In this document: in pieces, positions 11,701-55,586 of the stretch | How positions within the stretch are numbered: position 1 is the stretch's first letter | Layout: the number at the start of each line of letters is the position of its first letter | From: Leucoraja erinacea | Taxonomy: Eukaryota | Assembly: GCF_028641065.1 (NCBI RefSeq) | Contig: NC_073394.1 | Coordinates: forward strand, 41,416,001 to 41,480,000 | DNA: 64,000 nucleotides | Reading direction: 5' to 3' | Translations under genes and position numbers: made by a program | Notes under the pieces: generated by a model | Told to the model about the DNA's origin: nothing | Seen by the model: the letters and a program-made list of their open reading frames with translations, nothing else | Databases searched by the model: none

Positions 11701-14700
11701 TACCGAAAACGGAACAATTAAATTCTTACTTCGATGGTCTACTGTAGATGGGGCATCTTGGTCAGCATGGAGAAGTTGGGCTGAAGGGCCTATTTCCATG
11801 CTGTATCACTCTCTTCCATCACAAGTAGATACTGTCTCAGCCATTGAGAATGATCATAATCCTGGTACATTTGTGGTTTGGTGGGGAAGTTTGGTGCTGG
11901 TCTTTCATTGACTGCCTAGTAATTCATACAGATGTTTGTGGCCCTGGCCGTGCAAGCTTTGGGAGACCCTGATAGAAATATCTAACATGATTAGAGGCAT
12001 TGATAGGTGTCGAAGTCAGAACCGTTATCCCAGAGTGGAAATGTCAAAGACTGGAGGACATAGCTTCAAGGTGAACAGGGCAAAGATTAAAGAATATGTG
12101 CAGAGCAAGTTTTTTTAAACAGAGAGTGTCTGCAACACGCTGCCAGGGGTGGTGGTGGAGGCAGATACCATAGTGGCATTAAATAGGCTTAAATGATCAC
12201 ATAGATATACAGGGAATGGAGGGATATGGATTATATACAGGCAGATTAATTTAATTTGGCATCATGTTCAGCATGGACATTATGGGCCGAAGGGCCTGTT
12301 CCTGTGTACTGTTCTAAATTTGTTCTTTCCATATGCCATTAAAGCATAGTTTTTTTCAGTTGCCTAGTTTTTCTATATTTTTCTCATTTTTTCCTTTCTA
12401 TGTACATTACCTTAATCTCTTAATCTCTCCTTTCCAATATGCAGCAGCAGGATTTACTTTATTGCCAGTTAACTCTGTATATACAGCACTTGTATACACA
12501 GCACGATTGATCCCAGGCTTTTGGCGCTGTAAGGCTGCAACTCTACTGCTGTGCCACTATGCTGCATCTAAAACTAACTATCACACACCACTCTTCTGTA
12601 TGTGTGGGTGAGTCGAGTCAGAAATTGAGGTGTGAATAGCCCTGTAAACCCTTGTTATTTCTGATTGCAGCAGGTCATGGAATCACTAATTGGAATTCCT
12701 ATGCCTTTAATTAAAGGGGATATAAATTGCACAATTATGGTTTCAATGTATTTAATAACTGTCCCCCCCCCCCCCCCCGCCCCTTCCACCAAAATTCCTC
12801 CCTCCATGTTACATTTCACTCCTCCCCTTCTCTCCTTATCTGACACATTTTGTCTCCTTATCACCTCTAGCCTTTTGTCCACCCATCCTCAAATCAGTAA
12901 AAATCCCTCCTCACCTACCACTTTGTCCAACCCCCATTTTCTTATCATCTTTCCCCCACTACAATCAGACTGAAGGAAGGTCCAGACCCGAAACATCACC
13001 TATCCATGTTCTCCAGAGAAGCTGCTGAGTTACTCCAGCACTCTGTGTTCTACACAACATTTTGGCATCTGCAGTTCCTCGTGTCGCCTCTTTAAAATCC
13101 TGTCCACGTCTATTGTTATTTACTATTGGCAAAAATGAAGGAGTCTGCAAATAAAGAAGGTTATTTCACGTGGCATGGTGTTTGTGGATATGCTGATTCT
13201 TAGTGTTTTACATTCCAGAACCTGTGGAACATTCGTCAACAGGGGCTATTCTTGGAGTTTTATTTGCTGGAATTATTCTATGCGCACTAATTGCCTTTGG
13301 ACTCTATGTTTACTTCGTGAAATACAAACCAGGTAATTTGACAAATGGAGAATGTTCCTCAATGCGTTCAGAGTAAAGGGGGCTGAATACTTTTGCACGC
13401 CACACTTTTCAGTTTTTTATTTGTAAAAAAATTTGAAAACCGTGTATCATTTTCCTTCCACTTCACAATTATGCGCCACTTTGTGTTGGTCTATCACATA
13501 AAATCCCAATAAAATACATTTACGTTTGTGATTTTAACAGGACAAAATGTGGAAAAGGTCAAGGCGTATGAATACTTTGGCAAGCCACTGTATGTGAAGT
13601 GAAAAGGATTAGTTAAAACAAATGTAGGTCCCTTGCAGTCAGAAACAGGAGAATTGATCATGGGGAACAAGGACATTGCAGACCAATTGAATAACTACTT
13701 TGGTTCTGTCTTCATTAAGGAAGACATAAATAATCAGCCGGAAATAGCAGGGGACCGGGGGTGAAATGAGATGGAGGAACTGTGAAATCTAGGTTAGCTG
13801 GGAAGTGGTGTTAGGTAAATTGAATGGATTAAAGGCCGATAAATCCCCATGGCCAGATAGGCTGCATCCCATAGTACTTAAGGAAGTAGCCCCAGAAATA
13901 GTGGATGCATTAGTGATAATTTTTCAAAACTCTTTAGATTCTGGAGTAGTTCCTGAGGATTGGAGGCTAATGTAACCCCACTTTTTAAAATGGGAGGGAG
14001 AGAGAAAACGGGGAATTACAGACCAGTTAGTCTAACATCGGTAGTGGGGAAACTGCTAGTCGGTTATTAAAGATGGGATAGCAGCACATTTGGAAAGTGG
14101 TGAAATCATTGGACAAAGTCAGCATGGATTTATGAAAGATAAATCATGTCTGACGAATCTTATTGAATGGATAAGGGAGAATCAGTGGATGTGTTATATC
14201 TGGACTTTCAGAAGGCTTTCGACAAGGTCCCACATAAGAGATTAGTATACAAACTTAAAGCACACGGTATTGATGTGGATAGAGAACTGGCTGGCAGACA
14301 GGAAGCAGAGTAGGAGTAAACGGGTCCTTTTCAGAATGGCAGGTAGTGACTAGTGGGGTACTGCAAGGCTCAGTGCTGGGAACCCAGCTATTTACAATAT
14401 ATATTAATGATTTGGATGAAGGAATTGAATGCAACATCTCCATGTTTGCGGATGACACAAAGCTGGGGGGCAGTGTTAGGTGTGAGGAGGATGCTAGGAG
14501 GCTGCAAGTTGACTTGGATAGGCTGGGTGTGTGGGCAAATGTTTGGCAGATGCAGTATAATGTGGATAAATGTGAGCTTATCCACTTTGCCGGCAAGAAC
14601 AGGAAAGTACACTATTATCTGAATGGTGGCTGATTTGGAAAAGGGGAGATGCAACGAGACCTGGGTGTCATGGTACACCAGTCATTGAAAGTAGGCATGC

Positions 14701-55586: not shown

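Follow-up and report, generated by a model that had tools for sequence, protein, structure and literature searches.

The gene and its exons

The 64-kb window, that is, the whole stretch of DNA analysed here, carries most of the gene LOC129705966 of the skate Leucoraja erinacea, from the leader ATG at 2021 to the stop codon at 55586 on the + strand. Its exons tile, exon by exon, the NCBI model XP_055505910 (isoform X8, 1086 aa, referred to below as P0075) in the order leader, IgV, IgC1, transmembrane (TM), C1*, four C1-set exons, six 45-nt micro-exons and a terminal Ig-like exon. The features of the locus are as follows.

2021..2162, + strand: leader exon; ATG at 2021, P0075 residues 1-47, GT donor after 2162, phase 1
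7004..7339, + strand: IgV exon; P0075 49-159, Pfam V-set 44 bits
9220..9540, + strand: IgC1 ectodomain exon; P0075 161-266, Pfam C1-set 46 bits
13219..13332, + strand: TM exon; 114 nt, AG/GT borders, phase 1-1, a 29-residue hydrophobic stretch followed by KYKP
18085..18528, + strand: C1* exon; divergent C1-like Ig domain, no Pfam match
21822..22199, + strand: C1a exon; P0075 454-578, Pfam C1-set 48.9 bits
23240..23548, + strand: C1b exon; P0075 580-681, Pfam C1-set 64.5 bits
24684..26060, no strand: assembly gap; runs of N at 24684-25618 and 25633-26060 in the C1b-C1c intron
28362..28694, + strand: C1c exon; P0075 683-792, Pfam C1-set 32.4 bits
29620..29931, + strand: C1d exon; P0075 794-896, Pfam C1-set 51.8 bits
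32845..33157, + strand: C1e pseudo-exon, a decayed sixth C1; similarity to Rhinoraja C1e
35054..35098, + strand: micro-exon 1; 45 nt, ttattctgcag and gtaaaa borders, P0075 898-911
44789..44833, + strand: micro-exon 2; tiles P0075, inside a tandem unit 97-99% identical
46510..46554, + strand: micro-exon 3; tiles P0075
47846..47890, + strand: micro-exon 4; tiles P0075
49561..49605, + strand: micro-exon 5; tiles P0075
50393..50437, + strand: micro-exon 6, a diverged copy; tiles P0075
55285..55586, + strand: terminal Ig-like exon; P0075 988-1086, ends ...DFALILS*

Each exon was compared singly with the database protein. The exons in use in P0075 have AG...GT borders, a length divisible by 3 and phase 1-1, and their translations form consecutive blocks of P0075, with one junction codon separating neighbours. 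By these splice borders, this phase and the match to XP_055505910, the Ig, TM, micro- and terminal exons that a preliminary description had listed are real. The leader exon (2021..2162) sits outside the range covered there (13219-55586). Nine isoforms are annotated for LOC129705966, their proteins being computed models, and every one of them includes the TM exon together with the complete Ig tail. The gene belongs to a local cluster of B7-H6-like paralogues, in a locus rich in repeats and recent duplications. Only repeats and GC-rich sequence are found in the downstream region at 56-64 kb, which contains no further exons of the family.

A decayed Ig exon had also been counted as part of the protein, and this does not stand. 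The stretch at 32845-33157 retains an open frame and 62% identity to the intact sixth domain of Rhinoraja; the AG acceptor and the C.V.H motif are lost, and the stretch is absent from every annotated isoform (P0071-P0077 included). It is a pseudo-exon. The assembly gap at 24684-26060 is bordered by GT-rich simple sequence and is, as far as can be told, intronic and non-coding; no reading frame must cross it, and C1b is followed directly by C1c (...WVAGEI to VSLPELT...) in the NCBI isoforms and in 14 orthologues. A tyrosine motif in the micro-exons was considered and rejected, Rhinoraja having Cys for Tyr and the stingray repeats being unrelated. In some sharks the linker contains YENI or YSNI, with a variability too great for either to count as evidence.

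Ectodomain and Ig domains of the tail

Searched with the whole protein (PDB phmmer), human B7-H6 is by far the best match among solved structures (4zso/3pv6/6yjp, E 1.3e-36). It is also the best PDB match of each ectodomain exon alone, with E 8e-14 for IgV (next family 4e-7) and E 1e-16 for IgC1 (next 2e-11), a lead of at least 5 orders of magnitude for both. The likeness to B7-H6 on which the preliminary description was built thus holds for the whole protein and for both exons. Assigned to the B7-H6 lineage by best-match similarity only, the IgV-IgC1 ectodomain is most similar to B7-H6 among known proteins.

The tail that follows the TM segment comprises about 786 residues and six Ig folds, in good agreement with the roughly 780 residues and six folds estimated earlier. 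Pfam calls the ectodomain C exon and C1a-d as C1-set at 32-65 bits (PF07654, gathering cut-off 21 bits) and gives no match for C1* or the terminal exon. Both of these are modelled as confident beta-sandwiches (AF2 pLDDT 85.9 for C1* and 94.6 for the terminal domain) and are matched by Foldseek to solved Ig domains with a probability of 1.00. The matches are beta-2-microglobulin, MHC II beta-2 and TCR C domains for C1* (E about 1e-5), and titin M4 (top), beta-2-microglobulin, HLA-DM and CH1/CL for the terminal domain, so that an Ig fold is predicted for both. C1*, for which 57 representative homologues were found, has a disordered C-D insertion and no disulfide pair. The PDB matches of C1b include UrIg2 (E 8.5e-19), IgA and MHC I alpha-3, with E about 1e-18.

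The canonical Cys pair is confined to C1a and C1b, where it is present in 14 of 14 orthologues. C1*, C1c, C1d, C1e and the terminal domain have at most one canonical Cys in all 14 species, the F-strand Cys being absent from C1c (in all species) and from C1d. The canonical disulfide pair is thus missing in five of the seven ancestral tail domains, a state that predates the shark-coelacanth split. The sequon DNRT of C1a is retained in 11 of 14 species.

One message and its conservation

Do the Ig exons downstream of the TM exon belong to the same message as the ectodomain? In a 993-nt contig from public run X1 the end of the TM exon at 13332 is spliced directly to 18085; the contig includes 13217-13332 and 18086-18528, which differ from the window at 1 and 0 positions, respectively. 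The 13332/18085 junction, proposed earlier from the genomic letters, is therefore present in spliced RNA, in a contig that may stem from a near-identical paralogue. The depth of the TM exon is about that of the C1* exon in runs X1, X2 and X23. Logan fragment P0078 joins C1* to C1a, its C1* being identical to the locus and its 3' end different. TM/C1* is the read-tested junction, the other junctions being drawn from the NCBI models and P0078.

The same layout is common to skates, rays, sharks, chimaera, coelacanth, bichir and frogs, and homologues of the post-TM domains sought in shark, chimaera, amphibian and coelacanth were found within it. About 30 representative relatives (including Callorhinchus, Latimeria, Erpetoichthys, Xenopus, Rana and other frogs) have a strong hydrophobic segment ending 10-30 residues before C1*, and no second TM; in Callorhinchus V9K7L7 (P0137) the layout is identical in order. 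The TM-C1* neighbourhood thus recurs in about 30 diverged proteins spanning more than 400 million years. Between Leucoraja and Amblyraja the tail shows 89% identity, and it can be aligned out to coelacanth. The spliced contig, the nine isoforms and the layout of these relatives place the post-TM Ig exons and leader-V-C1-TM in the same message, as had been suggested. Our literature search brought up no account of B7-H6 homologues with Ig domains behind the TM; an earlier mention is possible.

Membrane topology and comparison with known systems

P0075 contains a signal-peptide-like h-region (residues 29-47, 19 residues, hydropathy 2.29) and a TM segment (277-295, hydropathy 2.82), and hydropathy indicates no second TM elsewhere in the protein. 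When the introns were scanned for hydrophobic exons that are in phase and flanked by splice sites, only 23111-23239 was returned; this candidate was rejected as a second TM, being a T-rich tract and repeat 5' of C1b found in no isoform or orthologue. The hydropathy of the protein and the intron scan are thus in line with the earlier statement that no second TM follows the TM exon. The net charge averages -0.93 ahead of the TM and +2.07 behind it (positive-inside rule). Hydropathy and the charge flank predict a type I single-pass protein, and the signal peptide, the one stop-transfer segment and the positive C-flank suggest that the tail is cytosolic. The frequency of N-glycosylation sequons per 100 aa weakly favours the same location, at 0.63 in the tail against 0.58 expected from the composition background and 1.02 in the ectodomain against 0.78 expected, an enrichment. 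The lack of a disulfide pair in most tail domains fits a reducing compartment.

The main product is probably a type I membrane protein with its B7-H6-like ectodomain outside and its Ig tail in the cytosol. The signal peptide would export the IgV-IgC1 pair from the cell, where it presumably meets an NKp30-type receptor. The single 29-residue hydrophobic segment, followed by KYKP..K, would stop translocation, so that the remaining residues, about 786, would be made in the cytosol. The tail would contain five C1-type Ig domains (the sixth having decayed in the skate), four to six acidic repeats of 15 residues each encoded by cassette micro-exons, and a last Ig-like domain. A rod of this kind, long and built of beta-sandwich domains, could link binding of the ligand to the cell interior in a putative scaffold or signalling role. 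Chances are about even that the C1-set domains make up the cytoplasmic part of an ancestral B7-H6-type ligand, as a disulfide-free rod for reverse signalling or cytoskeletal anchoring. The cassette micro-exons would tune the length of the tail. The arrangement may date to the first jawed vertebrates and persist in cartilaginous fish, coelacanth, bichir and amphibians, but not in mammals, whose B7-H6 ends in another type of tail.

Alternatively, the TM exon may be a cassette and the major or co-equal product a secreted chain of at least eight Ig domains (V-C1-C1*-C1a-d-linker-Ig), every domain of which would fold and gain its disulfides and glycans in the secretory pathway, with the anchored form minor or regulatory; we regard this as rather unlikely. 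Skipping the TM exon preserves the frame because all exons are phase 1-1. An exact skip, by which the Ig domains would sit outside the cell in a secreted all-Ig protein, is annotated in the Hemitrygon akajei orthologue (X6, P0107 versus P0004) and in a Heterodontus francisci paralogue (X3, P0086 versus P0084). The invariant Cys pairs of C1a and C1b and the widely retained DNRT sequon are features to be expected of domains exposed to the secretory pathway. To our knowledge, moreover, C1-set domains elsewhere lie without exception outside the cell or in the lumen; we know of none in the cytosol, and of the set only from Ig/TCR/MHC/tapasin-type ectodomains. However, constitutive skipping, named earlier as a threat to the membrane-bound reading, is not seen among the annotated isoforms at the locus (0 of 9), and P0107 is the only TM skip among the isoforms examined in ten further clusters. 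The similar depth of the TM and C1* exons in the three runs also argues against this secreted reading, as do the background level of sequons in the tail and the loss of the disulfide in five of seven tail domains, which would be very unusual for secreted C1-set domains.

Two further readings bear on the continuity of the gene and on the orientation of its product. A conventional leader-V-C1-TM-short-tail gene could adjoin a separate C1 array or pseudo-exons and be annotated as one, the apparent continuity arising because all IgSF exons share phase 1; phase 1-1 continuity is then expected by chance. Read-through of the 13332 donor would indeed give a short tail, with a stop after 14 further codons, and the repeats and duplications that fill the locus favour such an artefact. 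However, the spliced contig links 13332 to 18085, P0078 links C1* to C1a, and a separate downstream transcript with its own leader, which the preliminary description had considered, is not seen, there being no leader or start codon ahead of C1*. Together with the recurrence of the TM-C1* neighbourhood and the conservation of the tail out to coelacanth, this largely refutes the artefact, which is almost certainly wrong. Isoform X9 (P0071), whose start is ATG 1963, lacks a signal peptide; its TM segment could act as a signal-anchor giving a type II protein, with the C-terminal Ig array luminal and V-C1 cytosolic. In the absence of a signal peptide, a long N-terminal domain is not readily inserted N-out. 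The type II topology is very improbable, as the positive charge on the C side of the TM opposes type II insertion, the Cys pairs and B7-H6 likeness of V-C1 are those of an ectodomain and X9 is one computed model among nine.

If the type I reading is right and the tail cytosolic, the protein is an exception to the rule by which C1-set Ig domains are confined to the outside of the cell or the lumen, and the ancestral B7-H6-type ligand would have possessed a large module folded inside the cell. Such a module would suggest that signals were sent into the cell bearing the ligand in the old NKp30/B7-H6 system, and would provide natural Ig domains that fold without disulfides, of interest for intrabody design. 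Should a TM-less form dominate, the gene product would be a new B7-H6-related protein, secreted and with multiple C1 domains.

Human B7-H6 (NCR3LG1), a natural-killer-cell ligand, is the ligand of NKp30, with a Gag-like tail bearing ITIM/SH2/SH3-type motifs. The skate and human proteins share a signal peptide, an IgV + IgC1 ectodomain and a single TM. They differ in the tail, which is short in human, by description, whereas the skate tail of about 786 residues contains six Ig folds and acidic repeats; the short Gag-like tail with tyrosine/SH3 motifs is not found in the skate protein. In a 2026 survey, TAPBP and TAPBPL are the nearest grouping to NCR3LG1 (PMC13262535). Tapasin/TAPBPR resemble the skate protein in their V-like + C1 + TM layout, but the similarity is far weaker than that of B7-H6 (the IgV exon matches TAPBPR only weakly, E about 2e-3) and they have no Ig tail.

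The UrIg/UrIg2 genes of elasmobranchs have similarly long runs of C1-type exons, duplicated and decayed species by species (PMC12227049). UrIg2 consists of VJ + 9-11 C1 domains and then a TM, with every Ig domain outside (PMC12227049). In the skate gene, by contrast, the TM comes after the second domain, the C1 run follows it and the V is of B7 type rather than VJ. An identity as a UrIg-type gene was thus rejected on domain order, neither a VJ-type V nor a C1 run wholly ahead of the TM being present.

Butyrophilins, in which a B7-related V-C ectodomain and a TM are joined to a folded B30.2 domain inside the cell, provide a precedent for inside-out/outside-in coupling. Like the skate protein, they tie a B7-family ectodomain to a large folded intracellular module, but here this module is a chain of Ig domains rather than B30.2/PRYSPRY and the tails share no homology. 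Cytoplasmic beta-sandwich modules are also known from integrin beta-4, whose cytoplasmic tail includes four fibronectin type III domains, and from the I-set Ig domains of titin/obscurin, which are cytosolic and lack disulfides. Those are FnIII or I-set domains, whereas the tail domains of the skate protein are C1-set by Pfam.

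Exon structure and isoforms of LOC129705966

Open frames bearing Ig hallmarks lie on the + strand, where Pfam calls a V-set domain (6973-7404) and a C1-set domain (9192-9644) before the transmembrane (TM) segment and four C1-set domains after it (21794-22207, 23251-23628, 28367-28738 and 29658-29960). The membrane segment, of classical type, lies within frame 13197-13373, its exon preceded by ttccag and followed by gtaatt. Exon borders were refined, and the exons were compared singly with isoform X8 of LOC129705966 (P0075 = XP_055505910, 1086 aa). The exons of the window match the Leucoraja erinacea NCBI protein models exactly, and successive blocks of P0075 are the exon translations, with one junction codon between blocks. 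All exons have AG/GT borders, a length divisible by 3 and phase 1-1, and every intact exon previously claimed to run in phase from the TM exon to a stop at 55586 is present and tiles isoform X8.

Exons tiling P0075 (window positions, strand, content)
2021-2162, +, leader
7004-7339, +, IgV (Pfam V-set)
9220-9540, +, IgC1 (Pfam C1-set)
13219-13332, +, TM (hydrophobic segment)
18085-18528, +, C1*, a divergent C1-like domain (without Pfam match)
21822-22199, +, C1a (Pfam C1-set)
23240-23548, +, C1b (Pfam C1-set)
28362-28694, +, C1c (Pfam C1-set)
29620-29931, +, C1d (Pfam C1-set)
starts 35054, 44789, 46510, 47846, 49561 and 50393, +, six 45-nt micro-exons
55285-55586, +, terminal exon including the stop

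Although Pfam misses C1* and the terminal exon, both are Ig folds. The AlphaFold model of C1* has a pLDDT of 85.9, with residues 67-83 forming a disordered insertion, and that of the terminal domain reaches 94.6. In Foldseek, C1* resembles beta-2-microglobulin, MHC II beta-2 and TCR constant domains; hits for the terminal domain are titin M4, beta-2-microglobulin, HLA-DM and CH1/CL. The decayed Ig exon of the preliminary description (32845-33157) derives from a sixth C1 domain that Rhinoraja, sharks, chimaera and coelacanth retain in intact form; here the exon's frame is still open, but it lacks an AG acceptor, has lost the C.V.H motif and is used by none of the nine annotated NCBI isoforms.

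All nine isoforms at the locus include the TM exon together with the complete tail; they differ in micro-exon number (four to six). Isoforms X1-X7 use an extra leader, V and C1 unit upstream of the window; they start with a leader and first V-C1 pair absent from the window, whose own leader, a duplicate copy, serves X8. The start of the gene thus lies 5' of the window, and its leader/V-C1 unit exists in two alternative versions. Isoform X9 lacks a signal peptide, its translation beginning at ATG 1963 in an alternative first coding exon (1963-2002, MYSRETTRGHENE). Each micro-exon sits in a unit of at least 300 nt, present in six copies (35039-35338 and 44774-50677). Five units are 97-99% identical and 1.3-1.7 kb apart, and the first lies about 9.7 kb from the rest. 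Their near-identity and spacing mark a recent tandem duplication; the same identity means that mapping ambiguity may lie behind part of the isoform variety. LINE fragments and simple repeats are abundant across the window. An intact-looking 638-aa reverse-transcriptase ORF (LINE, 35615-37531) lies in the intron that separates micro-exon 1 from micro-exon 2, and many decayed copies of it, on both strands, fill other introns.

One message or two adjoining genes

Since IgSF exons as a rule share phase 1-1, continuity of phase alone proves nothing. Do the exons on either side of the membrane segment then share a message? A 993-nt contig from public sequencing run X1 has the TM exon spliced directly to C1*: contig 28-143 corresponds to window 13217-13332 with one difference, and 145-587 to 18086-18528 with none; the contig extends a further 27 nt upstream and 406 nt downstream into neighbouring exons. 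Run X2 yields contigs for both exons at similar depth (5.1 vs 4.9-6.3), and raw oligo-dT reads of run X23 cover both thinly (about 2-4x). The next junction, C1*-C1a, is present in the Logan fragment P0078 (270 aa), identical to the window in C1* and with two changes in C1a. The fragment then closes with 43 unrelated residues (APIQMLPQEV...) that the window does not encode, and its source is probably the neighbouring paralogue with a two-domain tail.

Run X2 also yields, beside a window-identical contig, one carrying 12 extra nt at 18343-18348 within the C1* disordered loop, so this sample expresses two or more members of the family. Given these paralogues and the likeness of P0078, the run X1 contig could stem from a nearly identical paralogue. 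Junction 13332/18085 is thus crossed in RNA, but possibly in a transcript of different origin. That Ig exons follow the TM exon in the same message is supported by this contig, P0078 and the nine isoforms, and an artefact of two adjoining genes seems highly improbable.

Relatives of the head and tail

The top solved-structure match of the whole protein is human B7-H6 (NCR3LG1; E 1.3e-36), which also ranks first for the V exon and for the C exon, each searched alone, by at least 5 orders of magnitude. A HMMER scan with C1* alone retrieves 57 representative proteins; in about 30, C1* is preceded at a distance of 10-30 residues by the end of a strongly hydrophobic segment, and no second such segment follows. 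Sources include skates and rays (among them Amblyraja, Rhinoraja, Narcine, Pristis, Mobula, Hemitrygon and Hypanus), several sharks, Callorhinchus, Latimeria, Erpetoichthys, Xenopus, Pelobates, Rana, Ascaphus and Pogona, all labelled 'uncharacterized' in the database. Callorhinchus V9K7L7 (P0137) has an identical layout, end to end. Its accession series presumably comes from assembled transcripts. The arrangement is thus as old as the first jawed vertebrates. The gene, annotated yet unnamed, is classed by similarity with the B7-H6 lineage, as a member whose tail carries Ig domains. In the literature consulted we found no description of Ig domains after the TM in B7-H6 homologues, although an earlier mention is possible.

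The layout varies within the family. Ranid frog relatives (P0027/P0130, Aquarana; P0036/P0131, Lithobates; P0010, Staurois) are multi-pass: three hydrophobic segments separate a B7-H6-like ectodomain from one or more domains of C1* type. In paralogues from Callorhinchus (P0006/P0081) and Heterodontus (P0008/P0084), the tail is a long series of C1*-type domain repeats with acidic linkers between them; the linkers of Heterodontus consist of GKTIPKEIEDDSDRSLLENVPDSER repeats.

Where the tail lies

The signal peptide and single stop-transfer segment suggest a cytosolic tail. Following the positive-inside rule, mean net charge across 30 relatives rises from -0.93 on the N-terminal side of the TM to +2.07 on the C-terminal side, and, as had been proposed, no second TM was found after the first hydrophobic segment. 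The three segments of the ranid relatives again make an odd count. Furthermore, in all species aligned the canonical disulfide is missing from five of the seven ancestral domains of the tail; to our knowledge, secreted C1-set domains without it are very unusual. Sequons in the tail stand at a compositional background (0.63 vs 0.58 per 100 aa) and are enriched in the ectodomain (1.02 vs 0.78). Against a cytosolic tail, both cysteines of C1a and C1b are kept in 14/14 species and the C1a sequon DNRT in 11/14.

A second TM exon, earlier envisaged in the assembly gap at 24684-26060, would return the chain outside. The N runs (24684-25618 and 25633-26060) fall within the C1b-C1c intron; the exons on either side are complete, with their own splice sites, and no frame needs to span the gap. 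Nine of nine isoforms and 14 orthologues join C1b straight to C1c (WVAGEI directly to VSLPELT), and a hidden cassette exon, conceivable from the window alone, is suggested by nothing seen. GT/GTGC-rich simple sequence, translating as C, V and G runs, borders the gap (24425-24683 and 26061-26122) and probably caused it. Frame 23111-23239, which is open, in phase and adjoins the C1b acceptor on the 5' side, would translate into a hydrophobic run; it was rejected as an exon, being a T-rich tract beside a repeat and absent from all isoforms and orthologues.

Skipping of the TM exon would yield a secreted chain with all Ig domains luminal. Hemitrygon X6 (P0107) and Heterodontus X3 (P0086) are annotated without exactly this exon, frame kept; at this locus, however, no such isoform is annotated, and TM depth is close to that of C1* in three runs. 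The anchored form is therefore taken as the main product, and a secreted one seems less likely. Isoform X9, if real, would require the hydrophobic segment to serve as a signal-anchor; the resulting type II topology seems very improbable.

We thus lean, with some reserve, towards a type I surface protein with a B7-H6-like head outside and the Ig tail in the cytosol. The V-C1 head would be shown to an NKp30-type receptor, and the cytosolic side would form a string of about 25 nm, made of six Ig folds and a variable acidic linker. As analogies for how it works, the closest are the butyrophilins, with a B7-like head outside and a folded B30.2 module inside, and integrin beta-4, with fibronectin III domains within its cytoplasmic tail.
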